The notes beneath the pieces are model-generated. The model worked only from the letters and a program-made list of their open reading frames with translations. It made no database searches and was not told the origin of the DNA. Position numbers and translations under genes: made by a program. 64,000 nt of DNA from Bugula neritina (Eukaryota; Animalia; Bryozoa): contig OZ037766.1 of assembly GCA_964035545.1 (NCBI GenBank), positions 10,158,722-10,222,721 on the forward strand, given 5' to 3'. Positions 1,990 to 60,004 of this stretch are shown here, piece after piece. The number at the start of each line of letters is the position of its first letter. Position 1 is the stretch's first letter.

Positions 1990-3001
1990 TGTGTAGAAAC
2001 AATGTCTATATCTCTTCTGATAAAACACCGGAAATCAGCTGCTATCTATCCATAGCTACAAAAGAAAGGCAAATTTTAAATGATTATAGCAAATTTTAAG
2101 TTGATATTTTTACAATTCATGTTGATATTCACTGATATCATTGAAATTCAATTAGACATTAATATAAAATAAATGACACCCAACTGAAATTAATATATTC
2201 TAAACATTAGACTTCCTGTCCCTAGGAGCTTTACTCTGGTCGCTACAGTTGAGACTATAACAATTAGATAACTAATTTCAAAGTTTTTGCATTAGATTAT
2301 CCAACAGTGTCATTTTAAACTAAAATAGGAATACCCTTAAATTTCAGTTTGATCATGTTTTGTGGAACACAACCATTAAGCATTTTAACGCAACATCCAC
2401 AAAATCTAGTAACTTATCCTTGCTAACTGAAAAATACTTTGTGAAAAAAAGTAGTAGAATATTCAGTAAAAACTTAGCTGTTTTATTATTACTACAATTG
2501 AGCTTTCTACGCCAAATAATATATGCACAGTATCTAATATAAGCATAATAAATATTTATAAACAATAGATATACATTCACCAAATGTTCACATTTATACT
2601 CAATATGAATATAAATATTATAACAATAATATTTATAATAACAACACTAAATATTATGAGAATACAGTGAGTTATAATTATACCATGGTAAAAGAAAACT
2701 CCAATAAAAATTATAATAATAATTATGATTATCAACATCACTTTTATTTAAGTTTATCACCATCAGTTTTAGTTTAACTGCATTTAGCAAAAACTAATCG
2801 CTAACTCACTATTACTATTAAATTTAGTATGAGTGTATGAGAGTGAAAGCGAGTATTAGTATGATATTGAGTGTAATATTTACTGCATCAGGTTCAGCAA
2901 ACAGAAAATTTACACTTTACAGTTACTAGCTCGCATTTGACTTTCTCCCTTAAGTTCAATTTGAAGTTGAAGTTCATCATAATCACCGTTTTGATTTTAA
3001 T

Positions 3002-3334
3002 TGTTGTTCGGAATCCCGAAGCCCCTGTGGTGTAATGGTTTAGTGCGCCTGCTTGCAAGCTGGAGGTCTGTGGTTTGAATCCCGGTGGGGGCAATTATTT
3101 TACAAGCTATTTCGGCCTTGTCTTGTGGAAGTAATCTCAGGGAGTTGAGTGGAGAGTGGTACCTATAAACTGACAGAGTACATGGTGGGGGGGGGGGGGG
3201 CAGTCCAGTTCTGAAGAAAATTGGGTGGGATGTTGCTTGGAATCCTGAAGCCCCTGTGGTTTAATGATTTAGCGCGCCTGCTTGCAAGCCGGAGGTCTGT
3301 GGTTTGAATCCCGGTGGGGGGCAATTATTTTACA
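3002..3334 (+). mobile_element. Non-autonomous miniature LTR retrotransposon (TRIM) with tRNA-derived LTRs, copy 1
   Basis: Direct repeats 3002-3104 and 3231-3334 (TG...CA, about 92% identical), each with a tRNA-like A-box/B-box cassette. Purine-rich tract 3213-3230 abuts the 3' LTR. Perfect 5-bp TSD TTAAT (2997-3001, 3335-3339). Confidence 0.88.
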
Positions 3335-4408
3335 TTAATTTCATAGATTAATAACAACAAAAATTTAGAGCAAAAGGCAAGTGAACTGTGAGTGTGAATT
3401 CAATCCTCACCATGGGCATGCTTATGCTAAATTAAAACTTGAAGTTGAACTTTAAGTTTATCACAAAATAAAAATGATAAATCTAATCACTGTCACTATC
3501 ACTGAGTATCAGTATCATAATCATAATGATCATCATTATCATTATGATAATGTTTATTGTTTGAAGATCTGTCTCTCAAACTGCAAAATAAAGAAGAGTG
3601 GTAAAAAATGTTACTGTTGGTGTTACTGTTAGGCTGTCACTTTGACTTAGAGCACTGAGTGAGACTTACTCTTAGTGTTAGTCTAACAGTAACTCTAACT
3701 CTAACTAACTCTAACTGTCTAACTCTAAGTCTAAGTCTTACGCTAGCAGTAGCAGGGACTCAAACTCACACCCATAGACTATACAGTATACACTATAATT
3801 GCTTTAATGATCAGCGGTTATATAAATATTAATAATGTTTAATATAAATAACGATACCTATCCTGATACTCACACTGTCACTGTGATACTGATACCAATT
3901 CATTTCTCAATTTTATAAATGCACTGACACTGATTCATAACGATTATTCTGAAATTGGATAAGAAATAGCTTAGGTCTTAAAATCTTCAAACACAGGAAA
4001 TGAGTTCGCAACTAGGCTAACTGAGTGTTAACCAACTTTTTAATTATAATACATAAATAAGCTGAGTCCACAGTCTAATAATTGCTAGTGCTGCTCGAGT
4101 TGTATTCTCGTCGTACAACTGTACTGTGTACACGCTGGTTCAATTTCAGTCAATTATAAACGATGGAAGATTCAACCGATTGAAGAATAAAAGTTCACAG
4201 TATAATCTTTTTAATCACAAGGAAACTACTTCATGTAAAGAATACAGTATAAAAATAGTAATGATATACACATCTATAATTATTACTATTATTAAAATGT
4301 GAAAGGATTCATATTTTCAACGTCACAAAGGCGACATTCAGTAGTTATAATTAGTACTTACAAAACCATTGTTTTCTAAAAATTTACTTAAGTAGACGAA
4401 AATTGCTT

Positions 4409-4530
4409 GAAGCAGCACCAAATTGGAGGTGACTTACAGTTGATGCAGGAGTTGGGGATGGGGTTTGAACAACGATGTGTCTGAAAATACTTATACTATA
4501 CTCAATCACCCCCCAACTTGGTGATGCTTC
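4409..4530. repeat. Degenerate inverted repeat, possible old MITE
   Basis: GAAGCAGCACCAAATTGGAGGTGACT (4409-4434) is an imperfect reverse complement of 4504-4530. No clear TSD. Confidence 0.45.
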
Positions 4531-4775
4531 TAACGATATCCAAACTATATATACTTGTAGCAGTTTCAGTTTGAGATTATCATAATCATGAATGAGTTAA
4601 GCTTTATCATTGTGATTATGGTTATCAATATGAATAGCATTATGATATTATGCATTGAAATTCAAGAATGAATAGCATAGCGAAAGTACTGATAGTGATA
4701 GGGATAAGGATATTGAGTTTTATAATTATTAATTATAATCATAACGTTTATGAATATAATAATAATATAAATATT

Positions 4776-7300
4776 TGTGTTTCGGGACCGGCCCCCGACC
4801 TCCTTGTGAAAGTCGACAGGGATTATCCGTCGTCTCGCCCAACGACGGCCCCACATTTCCTTCTTGGACTGAGGGAAACCGGCCCACCATGGACCCAGCC
4901 GACAGCTCCACCGCGAAGGGATTGACTCACTGCACTAAGATCTCTTCTCGCACAGTCAGCTGGTTTAAGCTGCTGGCGAGTTGGATTCTATCATGAGCGC
5001 CCTCCACCACTCCCAGATCTGCCTACTGTTCACCCTGCAGGGAATAGTGGTGCGGGCGCGTCCAGGTATCGTACAGTTCCGTACTACCTGTACGCCCCCC
5101 ACAAGTGGACAGCCAAACTTGTCGACACAGGTGAGCTCCCACCCAGCAATAACCACCGCAGACTTGCTAAAATCAATATGGCATTCGGGTCTCTTCAAGA
5201 ATGGCATCTCGAGGATAGCACCTCCTTGAGTTGACTGACAATGAACGTCTCCTGAATCGCCTGATCCCGGACACGTCCCGTCAGCCCAACTATGCCATAG
5301 AAGCGAATACACGACCCGTCCGCCAACGTGCCGTGTTCCCCATCGTATGGCTCCAGACCAGCCTTGTCTCTAGCGCTTAGGGTGTTAAGGAGCTGGTGGC
5401 TTAAGAGGTTAGTAGCACACCCTGAATCCAGCAGGAAGGTGACAGTTTTACCGGCTACCTTGCCTGGTAAGAAGTAGCTGCCACCATGGGGTTGTACCCG
5501 CACTCTCCTATTGCGCTCGTTCTTTGCAGGATACACCTCTCTCGCTTTGAGCTTAGGCTGGGGTTGCGTCCGACAGCGGTGGACAGGTCTTCGAGAGAGA
5601 GAGGAAGCATTCCACCAGACACTAAGTCCTGTTACTCCTCCGACTCTGGCTCACACAACCGAAGCTATTGCGGAGTGGCAAGGTGAAGGTAGCAGGCTGG
5701 CCGCACGGCTTGCCTGTCTGTCGTGACACCTACCACTCCTGGGAGGTTGCCCGTCGCGTCTATACGGACTGCTGACGGCTCTCCAGCGGGAGAAGTCTTA
5801 TCTCCGGCCTGCAGCTGGCGGAAGTTCCTGTGGGCCGTGAGAGTTTAACTCCCTCCGCGCTGAAGAGCACTCCTTGCGGCGGTGCCCGAGGCTACCACAC
5901 TCCCAACATGTGGTAGCCCGCTCCCTTGACGGTCCCGCTCGTGACCGCAAGGGTCTGTGAGCAGGCTCAGCTGCTGGAGCCTGAGTGAGCGCCTCCACCA
6001 GTTTTGCCACCATGTCGGTCACTTGTGTGACCTTGGAAGCAGTTGCCAACTGGGTATTGGCGGCAGCCACACGGGTCGTCGCTTCAGTTTTGCTCTGAGC
6101 TGTTGCCAGCTCTGCGTCAACTTGGCAGGGCCCCGCGCGGCTCTTGTGTAATTGGGCGGCCTAGCCTAGGTAGGCCCCACCGTCGCGCAGTGCGTCCTCG
6201 ACCGTCGCGATTCTCCTTGCCAGAAACTGGTGATGGAGACTGAGGTAATTTACCGACTGCACAAAAGCGTCGAAAGTGTACCACTCACGGTTGGCAAGTG
6301 ACAAGTTGCTGTATGTGATCCGTGTCAACTTCTTGACCCTGGCGGCATGCTCCTGCAGTGAGGTGTGCGGATCACGCCGCAACCCCTGTAAGCAGACTCG
6401 CGCATCTCTGGGAGAGATGCTAAATCGAGTCCTCAAAGCAGCAAAGATGCCATCGACATCGGGTCCCAACTCATAGGGTTTGGCCTTCTCTGCCAATGAC
6501 ATCTGCAACTTCGACAGGGCCACGCGAGGTGACCACTGAGTGACTTCTGCCATGTCACTAAATTCTTGAATGTATTGCTCCACATCCTCATTGCCAGTGA
6601 AGACAGGAGCTTTCAGGCGATACCTATCGCCGGGTAACTCCCTGTGAGCCTCCTCGTCCTTCGGCATGGGATTTGTAAGAACAATATTGTTAACAGGCTC
6701 ATCGTCTTTTTGCCGCAAAAACTACGCCAGTTCTTCTGCTATGGCCGGGACTCCTTCGTTGTGTTCCGCCATCATAATCCTTATTGACTGTCCAAATAGC
6801 AGTTGCATTACACACAATTATCCCACTGCTGCCACCACTGTTGTAGCTTTGCGCACTGCTAGATCGGGTGTTATTGCATGATAATAACTACTGCATTTCC
6901 ACTGCGAGGTTATGTGAGGAACCGAGCAAGTCGATCATAGAACGATAGAATTATATTTAGATAATTATACACAAATAAAAATGTGATGCATAAGTAAGAA
7001 AGATTCACAACAGTTAAAGATTACATAGAGTTATCCTGCTGGTTACCATTACTGTCCAAGACTGGCTGTGGGCATCCGAAGGCGTTGCTTATAAAGGAGT
7101 GGTCGACCCTGATTGGTCGACCCTGATTGGTCGACATAGATCTCTGTATTATTGCCCGTATGAACTCACGGTGCTGCCGCATGTAGACGGCATAACTGAA
7201 AGTAGAGACGGCATGACTTGGAGTTGCCTTTCCTGACCATAATCTATTACACTATGTCTATCAGGGGACACTGGGGAGTATACTTTCGCTAGCCATTACA
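4776..7300 (-). mobile_element. Truncated, decayed Gypsy-type LTR retrotransposon (5' LTR, PBS, gag, protease; no RT/RNaseH/integrase or 3' LTR)
   Basis: GC-rich block. Gag-like ORF 6718-6161, zinc knuckle CWECGSLGHRRKEC (Cx2Cx4Hx4C), aspartic protease FLLDSG (5536-5195), with stops and frameshifts. PBS TGGTGGCAGCAGTGGGAT (6837-6820) is complementary to the tRNA-Leu 3' end. Confidence 0.9.
6839..7300 (-). promoter_or_regulatory. 5' LTR of the Gypsy remnant with CCAAT and TATA elements
   Basis: Minus strand begins TGTAATGGCT and ends AGCTACAACA, one base before the PBS. Two CCAAT boxes (7130-7126, 7116-7112) lie upstream of TATAA (7093-7089). Confidence 0.7.
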
Positions 7301-47039: not shown

Positions 47040-49775
47040 TTAGTCTGCTAGTGTTTTTCCCGTGCGTAGTTCACGGGCTGTTCTAATGAGGAAGCTATGC
47101 AGGAAATTATTAGTATTACAGGATATTGAATTAAAAGAGTTACTGTCCCCAATATTGGTATTACGGAGAGATTTCGTGGAGTTAAGAGTGTTAATTAGGT
47201 TAGGGAAGAATGCTTCATGCTGCAACACTTTGAAGAATAGCGTGAATCTGTGTTCTTGTCTGGATTTATTTAAAGCCTTTAAGTTTAACTCCGCCTTGGA
47301 TTCGGTCACTGAGACATCCCAGCCTTTTAAGTTTTTTACAAAACGTACTGCCTTGTTTTGAACTTTCTCTAGATTGTTGCTCAGCATGAGATGTGCAGGA
47401 TCCCAAATTTCGCAGGCATACTCTAGAAGCGGTCTACACAGGGTAGTGTATGCTATGAGCTTAACTTTAACTGGAGCATCATAGAGTACATTTTTGATTA
47501 ATCCTAAAATACGCATTGCTTTATTGACTACTGAGTTTATGTGATAATCCCACTTTAGATCATGTACCAAATAGATTCCTAGGTATTTTACACAGCTACT
47601 TTGTACTAATTGTTCGTTGCTCAAATAATAAGTGTGCGTTATAGGTTTAGGGCTTTTATCAAACACAATGATGTTGCTTTTTGTTGCATTGAATTTCATG
47701 GAGTTTTTAATACTCCAGTTGTGTAGAGCGTTAAGGTCATTTTGCAAATTTTCCTTGTCTTCGTCTTTAGATATATGCGTATATAGTATAGTGTCATCCG
47801 CGAAAAGCCTTACAGTGCAGTATTTTACACATTTAGTGATGTCATTAATGAAAAGTGTGAAAAGTGCAGGCCCTAAAACGCTACCTTGAGGGACACCTGA
47901 AGTAACAGCTACAGCATCAGAATTGTGGCCTTTAATCACCACTCTCTGAAAACGACTGGTTAGAAACGAGGATATCCATTTTACTAAAAGAGGATTTACT
48001 TTGTACTCAATAAGTTTCTGAATCAACAGATGATGGGGAACTAAATCAAAGGCCTTAGAGAAATCTAGCACTGCCGCATGTGTAGCCATTCCATTGTCCA
48101 TATTACTCAATATGTCATGTGTTAGGCAGGCCAATTGAGTTGTGCAAGACAGGTGACTTCTAAAACCATGCTGGTTTATGGACAGGATCTCATTCAATTT
48201 GTTTTGCATAAGGTGAAGTATAATGTGCTCCATCATTTTACAGACTATTGATGTTAAGGATATTGGTCTATAGTTAGAGGGCAACTCACGATTTCCTTGT
48301 TTGAATATTGGTGTGACATGAGCCAGCTTCCACTCTGATGGAAGTGTACCTGTTGTTAATGTATAGTTGTAGATGGAAGCTAATAGGGAAGAAATAATTT
48401 CAGGGGAGAGCAGTAGCTTTTGTTTGTTAATAGAGTCTGGCCCTGAAGCTTTACCATTTTTGAGAGACTTAATCAATTTTAACACACCTTCAGAAGTTAC
48501 TAATATGTTATCTGCATCAGTTGGAGCCGGAGCTTCTGGGAGCACACGTGCTGGTGTAAAAACACTGTGAAAATACAAGTTCAAAGTATTTGCAATGTCA
48601 GATAAATCATTAGAGCTGGTCTTTTCACTAATTTGAATGCTTTGAATACTGTTATTGTTGCCTTTAATTTCTTTAACATATCTGTAAAAAGGTTTCGAGT
48701 CTCCATTTGCCAATGGGTAGTATAACTTTTCACACATGAAGTCTTTTTTGAGTATTTTAAATAGTTTTTTGTTTTCACGCCTTAGTTTTTTGTATTTGTC
48801 AAATAAAACAGAATCACCTGTGAGCTTGTATCGTGAGTAAAGTTTTCTTTGCTTGTTGCAAGCTCTTTGAGCATCTTTATTAAACCAAACAGGTTGAAAA
48901 TGTTTTCTAGGTTTAAATTGCTTTTTAGGTACATGGTCAGTTATTGCCGAATGTAATCCATTTCTGAATGTAGACCAAACAGTATCAATGGGCTGTATAT
49001 CGTTTATTAGAGAGTTCACTTCTGAGAGCAAGGCTGCCATTGAGGAATCAAAACCGTTTCTATTTATTTTGTGATACACAAAAGTATAACTATCTTCTAC
49101 ACTTTCTTTAAACTTTTGGGGTGCTTCTATTGAGCATTCAATCATAAAGTGATCACTGACACCTGGTTGGATTACATTTAAGTCGCAAATTAAATGTTTA
49201 GAATTAGTGCAAAGAAGGTCAAGTATATTGCCAGCTATATGAGTTGGCTCATTAACAATTTGATCCATGTCTAATTCCGATAACAAATCTATGAAGTCAT
49301 TGTAAAAAGTTCTCCAACTGTTAGAGAAAGTGAAGTCATTCCAATTGATGCCAGGTAAATTAAAATCGCCAGTTAGAACTATTGTTGACCCTGGAAAAAG
49401 TTTTTTGATTTTTGACATGTAATCTACAAGTGGTTTAATGTTGTATGTTGAAGGCGGTCTGTAGTATGTTACCAAAATATAAGGAGCTACGTTAGATTCA
49501 AAATTAAACTTGATTGCTGTTATTTCTGCTTCAGATGGTATATCTATTGGAGAATGTGAGATTTGCGAATTAACAGCTATTAGTACACCCCCTCCATATT
49601 CATTCCTATCTTTTCTGTAAACCAGTTTGTTATTTGGATGGAAGATTTGAGCATTAGCATAGGATGGGTTTAAATGAGTTTCAGTGATAGACATCACATC
49701 GTAGTCAGAAGCTATAGCTTGTAATTCAGCAATTTTACCTTTGATTGATCTTGCATTGATGCTAATTAATCTGTA
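47040..49775 (-). CDS. LINE ORF2: AP endonuclease + reverse transcriptase
   Basis: APE motifs INARSI (upstream of the ORF-track start), ITETHL, YRPP, GDFN, LDL, SDH. RT motifs NYRPISLT, QHGFR, LDFSKAFD, GVPQGSVLGP, LFADD, KYLG. Confidence 0.95.
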   Translation of the reverse strand, partial: YRLISINARSIKGKIAELQAIASDYDVMSITETHLNPSYANAQIFHPNNKLVYRKDRNEYGGGVLIAVNSQISHSPIDIPSEAEITAIKFNFESNVAPYILVTYYRPPSTYNIKPLVDYMSKIKKLFPGSTIVLTGDFNLPGINWNDFTFSNSWRTFYNDFIDLLSELDMDQIVNEPTHIAGNILDLLCTNSKHLICDLNVIQPGVSDHFMIECSIEAPQKFKESVEDSYTFVYHKINRNGFDSSMAALLSEVNSLINDIQPIDTVWSTFRNGLHSAITDHVPKKQFKPRKHFQPVWFNKDAQRACNKQRKLYSRYKLTGDSVLFDKYKKLRRENKKLFKILKKDFMCEKLYYPLANGDSKPFYRYVKEIKGNNNSIQSIQISEKTSSNDLSDIANTLNLYFHSVFTPARVLPEAPAPTDADNILVTSEGVLKLIKSLKNGKASGPDSINKQKLLLSPEIISSLLASIYNYTLTTGTLPSEWKLAHVTPIFKQGNRELPSNYRPISLTSIVCKMMEHIILHLMQNKLNEILSINQHGFRSHLSCTTQLACLTHDILSNMDNGMATHAAVLDFSKAFDLVPHHLLIQKLIEYKVNPLLVKWISSFLTSRFQRVVIKGHNSDAVAVTSGVPQGSVLGPALFTLFINDITKCVKYCTVRLFADDTILYTHISKDEDKENLQNDLNALHNWSIKNSMKFNATKSNIIVFDKSPKPITHTYYLSNEQLVQSSCVKYLGIYLVHDLKWDYHINSVVNKAMRILGLIKNVLYDAPVKVKLIAYTTLCRPLLEYACEIWDPAHLMLSNNLEKVQNKAVRFVKNLKGWDVSVTESKAELNLKALNKSRQEHRFTLFFKVLQHEAFFPNLINTLNSTKSLRNTNIGDSNSFNSISCNTNNFLHSFLIRTARELRTGKTLAD

Positions 49776-50617
49776 GATATTTTGACTATTTGGTTTTTCT
49801 GTATTTTGTATGTGCTTAGAGGATCCTGTTTTCTTACGTCTCTTAACTGTTGTCTCAACTGAAAATCCTTGTTTTGCTCTTCTTTAGTTAAGTCTAGGCG
49901 TGCAAAAGTACCTGGTACTTTGAGATTGTTGATACGTTTTAAAAGTTCCCACTTGTCAAACTCTGAGTCAAGTGAGAGTCTAACAGGTCGAGGTTTATCT
50001 ACTTTTTTAGCCCCTAGTCTAATAGTATTAGATTTTGTGGCATTAAACATAAAACTACACTCAGAAATCATAGAATTTACCAGTTCGACTGTGTCAGCAG
50101 GGGATGATTCACCCTCATTAATGCCAAATATGATGACATTCTTCGCTCTGTTTTCAGTTGATAAATCATTTCTAAGATTTTTTATTTGTTTTTCTTGGTC
50201 TTTTATACATTTCTCTTGGTCATTTAGATGCTTGCTTAAAACACCTTCAGATTTTTCAATTTTGGAAACTACACTAGCATATGTTTCATCACTCTTGGAC
50301 TCTTGTGTGTCAATAAAAGTTTCAAGCTTTGTTTCTAATGCTTTAAACCTAGAGTCAATCGATTTGAGAACATGATCACACTTATCACAAAACCAGTGGA
50401 TTCCCCTCTTTTCAATTGTGTTCATGTCACTCGCATCTAAGTCCACGCATCTAATATGAAACCAGTTAAAGCAGGACTCACACTCGATCGTTAAGTCACT
50501 CAGGGTTTTATTGCACTTTTCACATTTTGATTTTTCAGTATTTTTCCTGCTACTAGCAGCATCACCAGAGGCAGCACTGTCCACACGACCTCTTCTTGTT
50601 TGCGTTTTGGGGGGCAT
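49766..50617 (-). CDS. LINE ORF1: PHD finger + coiled coil + L1-ORF1-like RRM region
   Basis: C4HC3 pattern CEKC..CESC..WFHIRC..WFCDKC, followed by a coiled coil, NVIIFGINE, RLG...PRPVRL and DLT motifs typical of CR1/L2 ORF1. Confidence 0.9.
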   Translation of the reverse strand: MPPKTQTRRGRVDSAASGDAASSRKNTEKSKCEKCNKTLSDLTIECESCFNWFHIRCVDLDASDMNTIEKRGIHWFCDKCDHVLKSIDSRFKALETKLETFIDTQESKSDETYASVVSKIEKSEGVLSKHLNDQEKCIKDQEKQIKNLRNDLSTENRAKNVIIFGINEGESSPADTVELVNSMISECSFMFNATKSNTIRLGAKKVDKPRPVRLSLDSEFDKWELLKRINNLKVPGTFARLDLTKEEQNKDFQLRQQLRDVRKQDPLSTYKIQKNQIVKISTD

Positions 50618-57900: not shown

Positions 57901-60004
57901 GTTCTTAGACCATCAAAATCTTGGAAGTATTCAATCACCTACCAAACCATTTAAATTACACTTAAATAAATAGAAAATGCCTAACATTGGCATTAAAAAT
58001 GAGATATTAAACTTATTAAAATATTGACTTTCGATTATTTAAAAACATATTATACATACCCTGAGTCGATTTGTGAGCACGTGATGCCTAACTCTGGCTA
58101 TCAAACTGCTCATATCAACCTCGCTGATATCACATTTGGGCACAGAACTCAGATCTGGGTACATTGGTTTAACTGCAGTTTCAGATAGAGTGACTCTACC
58201 ACCATCAGTACCAGGTATAGCCGTAGAGAAATCTACCGCTGGAGGACTGTCAATGGTGAATCCAACAAACTCTGTAACACAATTGTAGGTCAATGTATAC
58301 ATGTATGTGTGCATGTACATAGAAGGTACCTTGTGTTGCAAATGCATAAAATCACCGTTTGGAGTACAGCATAAGAAAATCAGTCAAAGTGAGTCATATT
58401 CAAGCTAATAATATTTAAATTACATTGCAGAAAAGTAGTCTAAATCAATCACAGAACAGCACAACATGTTACTTACTGTCGTCGATAGACTGTACAAAAG
58501 CAGGGTAGTTGACGTCACCAGTTGCCTGATCAATAAACTTGCGGCAAAGCAGCTTAAAATCTTCATCAGTTACATTTATTGTGAGAAAGTGAAGCATGCG
58601 TCTAAACTGCAGTGGGGTGATAACTCTAGTGTAGGCACAACTCTGAAAGGTATCACAACCAATTATCAAATTAAATATTAATTTGTCTAACATAACTTCA
58701 AATGAAGAATTGAAAACCACTAATTTTAATTGTAAGTTTTTAGTTGATATTGTACATATTAAAATAATTTAACTCATAAAAGTCAATTTTCTACAGCTTA
58801 CTAAAATTGTTATCAAATACTGGATATAAATTAATAGTTGGATGTTGACTATCTTTGGATAAATGTACCACAACATTTTTTGATTCTTAAAACACAATAT
58901 ATTACAGACTATATACCTTATGTTACTTTATTACTTAATTTCAAATTTGATCTATTGATCTGATAATAAACTCAGCAAAAACAGAGTTATAGATTCAGGT
59001 AAAGTCTGATGTCAAACTTTCAATTTTAAAAAAATTTAATTTTATTCACAATATTACAAACTTCCGTAAAATTAAATGTGTTTTCTTAAATTTTCCTTTT
59101 ATATGCCTGCATTTTATTGGACCTATATGCAGCTATATAACCATGGCATATAGAAGTCTAATAAAATGCAGGCAGATAATGCAAATGAAAATACAGTCAA
59201 GCTTTAGCTAAACATACCCTGTCGTAGTCTTTGAAATATTGGTACATCATAATACGTCTCTCATTAACCTGGTTGATGATCATGCTGAGTACCGTCTTGA
59301 GACGTGATTCTTCTGCGTCACTCAATGTTGGAATAGTCTAAACAAACAATAAATTACTATAATATGGAATATTGTGTGTATTCTGTTGGAGGAGACAACC
59401 CCCAAAACAGCTGCCTGTCAGCAGGTTGAGCTATACTATATTTATAAGTAGTAAATAAAAAAAATCTTTGATATAGTAAGTATTATGTACTTATTGTTCA
59501 ACTATTAGCTTCATGCTACCACACATATAGTATAACAAGTGCCATTTTAAAACTACTTTAGTTATTGTAGTGATGAGTTTACCCAGTGCCACCCCCCCCC
59601 TCGTAGTGTAATGGTTAGCACACTTGCTTGCAAGCCAGGGGTCTCGGGTTTGATTCCCAGTGGGGGCAATTATTTTTCAAGCTATTTCGGCCTTTAGTGA
59701 AATGTAGTAGTAGTACTCCGAGGGAGTTAAGAGGCCAGGGAAGCCTGAAGACTGAAGGAGTTGTAGATAGGCCAGTGGAGTTCAGAGAACTGGGTGGGAT
59801 GTAGTGATGAGTTTACCCAGTGGTCCCCATGCTGTAATGGTTAGCATACTTCCTTGCAAGCCAGGGGTCTCGGGTTTGATTCCCAGTGAGGGCAATTATT
59901 TTTTAGTTAATCATTGTATAGCTACCCCTCATTTTCAAAGAATATCTGCACTTTTATTTACTGTTCACCAACACCAAATTTTCTATACTACACACATGCA
60001 CACA

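Follow-up and report, generated by a model that had tools for sequence, protein, structure and literature searches.

Two repeats that score as tRNAs lie close together at positions 3002-3334 of the window, the whole 64,000-nt stretch of Bugula neritina DNA analyzed here (C2:10158722-10222721 of a 216-Mb assembly). In this study, we asked what these repeats are, how the sequence that holds them might be copied, and which other elements might move it. An earlier note, made from the letters of the window, had proposed that they are the LTRs of a complete TRIM, a miniature LTR retroelement with the layout TTAAT, LTR, 126 bp, purine tract, LTR and TTAAT, and every structural claim in this description proved correct in position (Table 1). 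The element has a total length of 333 bp. A repeat finder aligned its two LTRs at 92% identity over 90 nt, followed by an identical tail of 18 nt. About 71% of each LTR is tRNA-scoring sequence. The hit to Rfam RF00005 at 3021-3093 reached 32.5 bits against a gathering threshold of 29, with the anticodon loop one base short, in agreement with the previously described tRNA-like fold that occupies about 70% of the LTR and has a 6-nt anticodon loop. ARAGORN made no tRNA call in the window copy, and an Rfam scan across the element region gave no match to 5S rRNA. We rejected a minus-strand orientation of the element, for which the sequence before the other LTR is purine-poor and has no primer site of the tRNA type. 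A search with the 352-nt left flank found no second copy in the genome and no empty-site paralogue.

The surroundings of the element hold several other features. The flanks are A+T-rich and contain direct repeats (2949-2986 and 3427-3464, 71%), and inverted repeats are present on either side of the element (2704-2732 and 3517-3545, 79%). A minus-strand exon at 1294-2028, about 1 kb from the element, encodes the N-terminal domain of hormone-sensitive lipase (Pfam HSL_N, 1.6e-33). Approximately 280 nt downstream of the element, the sequence at 3610-3705 can form an imperfect hairpin (arms of 35 nt, 74% complementary); it scored 34 bits with the Rfam model mir-2012, which has a gathering threshold of 90, and this resemblance is probably due to chance. 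Farther along the window, a non-LTR retrotransposon on the minus strand (47040-50617) contains an ORF of 885 aa with endonuclease and RT, and upstream of it an ORF of 283 aa with a PHD finger. Elsewhere in the genome, we noticed a nuclear COX1 copy (G000:C6:11174072-11175412) with nine TGA codons and a score about equal to that of the mitochondrial COX1 copy on contig C321, which likewise has nine, and a COX1 sequence without in-frame TGA (G000:C17:12213-13505) that may be bacterial or use another genetic code. The mitochondrial COX1 with its TGA codons, the lipase exon and the LINE of the window mark the genome as one of animal type.

Table 1. Features of the TRIM at 3002-3334, of a second copy in the window, and of the hybrid insertion and candidate partner elements elsewhere in the genome. 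Plain numbers are positions in the window.
Feature	Position	Strand	Remarks
5' target-site duplication TTAAT	2997-3001	+	Same 5-mer again at 3335-3339
5' LTR, 103 nt, TG...ACA	3002-3104	+	Direct repeat of 3231-3334; boundaries recur in more than 12 genomic copies
Putative U3, 19 nt	3002-3020	+	Precedes the tRNA-like start and carries TGT, the integrase end on the 5' side; U3 is a presumptive label
tRNA-like module, 73 nt, 6-nt anticodon loop	3021-3093	+	Rfam RF00005
A-box-like motif	3028-3038	+	Within the tRNA-like module of the 5' LTR
B-box-like motif	3072-3082	+	Within the tRNA-like module of the 5' LTR
T4 run	3098-3101	+	Candidate Pol III terminator and R/U5 boundary; then ACA at 3102-3104 as the LTR end
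Primer-binding site AGCTATTTCGGC	3105-3116	+	Complementary to nt 1-12 of host tRNA-Phe-GAA
Internal region, non-coding, 126 nt	3105-3230	+	Poly-G run at about 3186-3200
Polypurine tract, terminal part GGGTGGGA	3213-3230	+	Abuts the 3' LTR directly
3' LTR, 104 nt	3231-3334	+	tRNA-like part 3250-3323, T4 run 3328-3331
3' target-site duplication TTAAT	3335-3339	+	Identical to the 5' 5-mer
Subfamily B copy	59566-59907	+	Shares primer site, purine tract and LTR tail with subfamily A
Hybrid provirus	L088 (G000:C5:8187000-8196999), 3219-7152		Perfect ATATG duplication on both sides
E1	C2:10820429-10825710		5,282 bp; 404-nt LTRs, 100% identical; duplication CATTC
E2	C2:20503672-20507978	-	4,307 bp; 271-nt LTRs, 100% identical; duplication TCTAC
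E3	L134 931-5194 and L137 858-5127		About 4.27 kb; LTRs of about 210 nt, 99.5-100% identical; duplications AGTTA, ATGTA

We analyzed the copies of this element in the rest of the genome. A DNA search with the window element gave 46 scored matches among 1,024 first-look candidates, and more than 12 of the scored matches span all 333 bp, with 70-87% identity. BLAST with the parts of the element showed that other copies have the same LTR-internal-LTR layout with unchanged boundaries. Dozens of full copies with matching boundaries are present genome-wide, and the TRIM structure at 3002-3334 is therefore not a product of chance. The earlier note had named a genome-wide BLAST of the LTR and internal parts as a test of its proposal, and the search returned full copies, solo LTRs and tandem arrangements of the type LTR-internal-LTR-internal-LTR (L002/L015 and L014), with a fixed 5-bp target-site duplication. 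To size the family we used pattern counts and samples; of the contigs sampled, the nine largest measure 10.9-35.6 Mb. A core pattern of the LTR, consisting of 19 nt of the tRNA-like anticodon arm with up to two mismatches, occurs 1,337 times in the genome and its reversed control not at all. Among 20 core sites from the start of the list, 18 were solo LTRs without an adjoining internal part. By these counts the family holds at least 1,300 LTR units, mostly solo LTRs.

The ends of the copies are uniform. All 12 full copies inspected have TG..CA ends, and the 5-bp duplication is perfect in seven of them and matches at 4 of 5 positions in the other five. In a larger set, limited to copies with TG/CA boundaries, 15 of the 23 evaluable full copies have a perfect 5-bp duplication and four more have a 4-of-5 match; the solo class of this set was left out because the partners of truncated LTRs had entered it. 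For solo LTRs we relied on the 20 core sites, which at exact TG..CA ends showed six perfect duplications and three more with 4 of 5. Only exact ends were counted, because a slack of ±3 nt at both ends gave 4 of 20 perfect matches in a displaced control. A perfect 5-bp flank match is expected by chance at about 0.002 per site in A+T-rich DNA. Hence, the 5-bp duplication reported for the window copy is family-wide and is found in full copies and solo LTRs alike. The LTRs within each sampled TRIM are up to 97% identical, mostly 83-94%, with the window copy at 92%. Because the LTR pairs are at most 97% alike, the window copy and the sampled family are old. Judged by its layout, ends and divergence, the sequence at 3002-3334 is a dead, old TRIM copy of the Helenus/TRIMp3 kind.

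The family comprises two subfamilies, A with the window element at 3002-3334 and a diverged subfamily B, which is represented in the window by a second copy (Table 1). ARAGORN reads part of the 5' LTR of this second copy, 59596-59667, as tRNA-Cys(GCA), and its duplication, GTTAT/GTTAA, matches at 4 of 5 positions. The two subfamilies have diverged unevenly. U3 is about 50% alike between them apart from its TGT start, the middle of the internal region about 56% and the tRNA-like part about 73%. The LTR tail, T-run and ACA included, forms together with the initial 15 nt of the internal region a block of approximately 33 nt that is near-identical in A and B, and the purine tract end GGGTGGGA is conserved in both. 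Within the LTR, per-column conservation scores over 88 copies were highest for the TG start, the anticodon arm, the B box and the tail, and the A box, the B box and the terminal T-run were all among the best-conserved columns.

The tRNA-like module is also a property of the family. ARAGORN called 17 family LTRs across 60 loci; in 15 of these the program assigned a two-base 'anticodon', equivalent to a 6-nt loop, one had an 8-nt loop and one was read as tRNA-Cys. The Rfam tRNA threshold was passed by 2 of 20 solo LTRs. Since the 6-nt anticodon loop is a family trait, the module cannot be a decoding tRNA. A run of T4 or T5 is present within the last 16 nt in 21 of 23 LTRs. No other run of T4 or longer was found from the primer site to the terminal T-run of the 3' LTR in 23 copies, for which shuffles predict about 14. 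These copies descend from about two subfamilies and A4 or longer runs are rare in them too (four), and we take the depletion of T-runs as weak support for transcription by Pol III. From the promoter-like boxes and the terminal T-run together, we infer that the TRIM is transcribed by Pol III. Transcription would start at the tRNA-like +1 (3021) of the 5' LTR, directed by the A and B boxes, and Pol III would leak past the first T4 run, a weak one in the 5' LTR, and halt at the second, in the 3' LTR. The predicted RNA is about 310 nt long; its R would measure about 80 nt, its U5 would be ACA and its U3 would have 19 nt.

The primer site had previously been described as odd, and we compared it with the tRNA genes of the genome. 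Each of the five tRNA-Phe-GAA genes begins with 12 nt whose exact reverse complement is AGCTATTTCGGC, the sequence that adjoins the 5' LTR; the site lacks TGG and has no match to any tRNA 3' end. A 15-mer consisting of the primer site and including the CA of the LTR occurs at 63 genomic sites, all of them TRIM-type, and at none in the control, and a further 40 genomic sites have the 12-mer followed by a different base. At least five families of LTR elements carry ACA and then AGCTATTTCGGC directly. The primer is most likely a 5' fragment of tRNA-Phe that would pair with the site, and we conjecture that the tRNA would then be cut after nucleotide 12, which would provide the 3' end. In full-text literature searches we came across no primer site that pairs with the 5' end of a tRNA, which does not prove that none has been described. 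The shared site suggests a mode of initiating reverse transcription for which the literature searched gave us no precedent.

We searched for autonomous elements that use the same primer site. Twenty further sites with the 12-mer resolved into at least five LTR families (E1-E5). In E1, E2 and E3, the LTR end ACA is followed directly by AGCTATTTCGGC, and the elements have a G-rich purine tract of the same type as that of the TRIM, which in E1 and E2 precedes the TG start of the LTR. E1 and E2 encode a gag protein with a zinc knuckle and a pol with the order protease, RT (RVT_1), DUF7047, RNase H and integrase, which is the order of Ty3/Gypsy and not of Copia elements. E3, the commonest of the families E1-E5, has intact ORFs that are assigned to gag and pol by their size. 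With their near-identical LTRs, E1-E3 are young, apparently intact, small (4.3-5.3 kb) and make 5-bp duplications. The LTR ends of E2 and E3 (TGTAATG..., ...TTACA) are closest to those of TRIM-B (TGTAGTG..., ...TTTACA). The pol of E2 has hundreds of relatives with 40-57% identity, mostly on contigs of about 4 kb, and the named ones are from a bryozoan and a leafhopper (43-54% identity). The closest relative, 57% identical, is L130 (ENA contig ERZ25067901:ctg35317, 1967-6147), an element of 4,181 bp with identical 230-nt LTRs and the 5-bp duplication ATTTT, in which ACA is followed by AGCTATCCCGGC, a different 12-mer that resembles a tRNA 5' end in a similar way.

A single locus joins the TRIM to one of these families. 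Two of the 63 TRIM-type sites, L088 and L089, have the end of an E2-family LTR in place of the TRIM tail, and they represent one locus, as L089 is a segmental duplicate of L088 with about 94% identity. The provirus at L088 begins with an E2-like 5' LTR (92% identical to E2), the primer site and 84 nt of the TRIM-B internal region. These are followed by about 86 nt that we could not assign and by a nested LTR element of 3.36 kb, the 224-nt LTRs of which are 95.5% alike. The remainder of the TRIM-B internal region with its purine tract and a TRIM-B 3' LTR complete the insertion. For a single locus, the probability that the flanks match at 5 of 5 positions by chance is about 0.002. Ordinary replication or ectopic recombination between separate insertions cannot yield two unlike LTRs under one duplication and was rejected as an explanation. 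The hybrid points to co-packaging of the two RNAs and is, as a single locus, the strongest evidence for the partner. Plus-strand strong-stop DNA made on an E2-family template may have annealed, via the shared primer site, to TRIM-B minus-strand DNA, so that the template transfer would have taken place in one particle and the hybrid product would have been inserted by one integrase. Searches with junction patterns found no further TRIM/autonomous hybrids and only variants of the TRIM.

These results suggest how the family could have spread. The TRIM RNA would be packaged in particles of E2/E3-like elements, reverse transcription would be primed at the shared site, and the integrase of the partner would insert the TRIM DNA. 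The LTR pairs of the sampled TRIMs (up to 97% identical), compared with those of the partners (99.5-100%), give no sign of current mobilization. The earlier note had suspected, from the 5-bp duplication and the primer site, that the element represents a lineage of its own and depends on another autonomous partner. This suspicion is borne out by the primer site, the ACA end and the 5-bp duplication, which are common to E1-E3, and by the one hybrid.

Overall, with a probability of roughly 0.8, we read the family as a TRIM of the Helenus/TRIMp3 kind that is transcribed into a Pol III RNA and has E2/E3-like partners with which it shares the primer site. One competing view is that 3002-3334 consists of two tandem tRNA pseudogenes or of a dimer of tRNA-SINEs copied by a LINE. 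Each repeat does score as a tRNA, and a LINE with endonuclease and RT is present in the same window. The copies examined refute this view, and we give it next to no credence: TG..CA ends and the 5-bp duplication are fixed in full and solo copies, CA is directly followed by the duplication without any A-rich, simple-repeat or LINE-type tail in the family copies, the primer site and purine tract are those common to LTR elements, and a hybrid with an autonomous LTR element lies under a single duplication. The preference of the earlier note for a TRIM over two tandem tRNA pseudogenes is thus upheld by the fixed ends and duplications and by the conserved primer site and purine tract. A more serious alternative, which we still consider unlikely, accepts a true TRIM moved by E2/E3-like elements and denies that the tRNA-like module is a promoter. 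The RNA would then be made by Pol II or by read-through, and the module could be a packaging or export signal, a tRNA mimic for Gag or RT, or the relic of a SINE in an ancestral LTR. The T4 run about 80 nt past the presumed start, which would stop much of the Pol III inside the 5' LTR, fits this alternative, as does the statement by Kojima 2024 (PMC10886601) that the use of Pol III by Helenus is unproven. However, it leaves room for a Pol II promoter only in the 19-30 nt of U3, the least conserved part of the LTR, and the A and B boxes, the terminal T-run and the missing internal T4 runs suit a Pol III unit.

The mode of priming could also be different from the one proposed here. In Tf1 and Tj1, the element's own RNA serves as a self-primer, which is made by RNase H cleavage, and the primer site of 11 nt adjoins the LTR directly and lacks TGG (PMC4600332). 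If the element studied here likewise used its RNA 5' end as primer, its match to tRNA-Phe would be fortuitous or a remnant. E1-E3 are similar to the Tf1/Tj1 group in their size, domain order and 5-bp duplication. Such self-priming is unsupported by the LTRs of TRIM-A, TRIM-B, E1 and E2, in which no complement of the primer site was found within three mismatches. Moreover, unrelated LTRs keep the same 12 nt that equal the exact 5' end of tRNA-Phe, and the relative in another organism, L130, retains the tRNA-5'-end shape with another 12-mer. We therefore regard self-priming as very improbable and priming by a fragment of tRNA-Phe as the better explanation of the shared site.

We next compared the family with known systems. 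Helenus elements are TRIMs with tRNA-derived sequence in their LTRs and form, together with Cassandra and Ajax, the group TRIMp3 (Kojima 2024, Biology 13:119, PMC10886601). By that definition, and going by its tRNA-derived LTRs, the window family is Helenus, a kind of element that was already published in 2024. It shares with Helenus the short LTRs, the short non-coding internal part, the tRNA-derived A and B boxes in the LTR, a primer site and purine tract in their places, and a tRNA-like part that is not a working tRNA. Its total length of 333 bp is well below the ceiling of about 1.3 kb and near the published minimum of 311 bp. The published Helenus elements of animals make 4-bp duplications, as the earlier note had stated, and have primer sites for tRNA 3' ends that are similar to those of Gypsy elements (PMC10886601). 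The window family, in contrast, makes 5-bp duplications, and its primer site lacks TGG and pairs with nt 1-12 of tRNA-Phe instead of a tRNA 3' end. Helenus elements of fungi and plants have 5-bp duplications, Copia partners and primer sites for the anticodon loop (PMC10886601), whereas the window family resides in an animal, has candidate partners with the Ty3/Gypsy order and does not use an anticodon-loop site. We also searched the published file of Helenus consensus sequences (DataS1) with eleven motifs of 9-12 nt, a word test and not an alignment, and found no family-level match. Nine of the 11 motifs, from the LTR, the primer site and the purine tract, had no hit, and the other two, a generic B-box motif (four hits) and a 10-mer from the anticodon arm (three hits), matched only unrelated Helenus families of fungi and Hymenoptera. 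The word test and the features described above set the window family apart as what appears to be a distinct animal lineage of Helenus.

Other systems share single aspects with the window family. Cassandra of plants and Ajax of nemerteans are likewise TRIMs with a Pol III small-RNA module in their LTRs, and Ajax makes 5-bp duplications too, but the module is 5S rRNA in both and a tRNA in the window family. Tf1/Tj1 resemble it in a primer site that adjoins the LTR and lacks TGG and in an RNA cut that is thought to expose an internal 3' end; the same likeness extends to copia and Ty5, which are credited with half-tRNA primers in work cited in PMC10886601. The complementary RNA is different, being nt 1-12 of tRNA-Phe and neither the element's own 5' end nor the region of an anticodon loop. 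SINE2 elements also have a tRNA-like Pol III head and are non-coding and present in many copies. Unlike them, the window family has LTRs bounded by TG and CA, makes a duplication fixed at 5 bp, lacks a LINE-type tail and is presumably mobilized by LTR machinery.

The results have a practical consequence for the annotation of this genome, as the tRNA-like LTR units, at least 1,300 in 216 Mb, will raise the number of predicted tRNA genes if left unmasked. For the Helenus group, the family adds an animal lineage that departs from what has been published as the rule for animals, namely 4-bp duplications and primer sites for tRNA 3' ends. It also comes with a concrete candidate partner, which is rare for TRIMs of the Pol III type: intact elements of about 4.3 kb and a hybrid that joins them to the TRIM. 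For Cassandra, no partner is known according to Kojima 2024 (PMC10886601). We see the added value in the partner clade and the hybrid insertion, and find the primer site the most surprising aspect. A bolder interpretation, which we offer tentatively and as somewhat doubtful, is that in this family, for the first time, a partner lineage has been identified for a TRIM of the Helenus type. It would be a Pol III-made mini-genome that parasitizes an undescribed and widespread group of small elements of the Ty3/Gypsy order, primed by the first 12 nt of a tRNA, and the hybrid would be the fossil of a particle in which a Pol III RNA and a Pol II RNA were packaged together.
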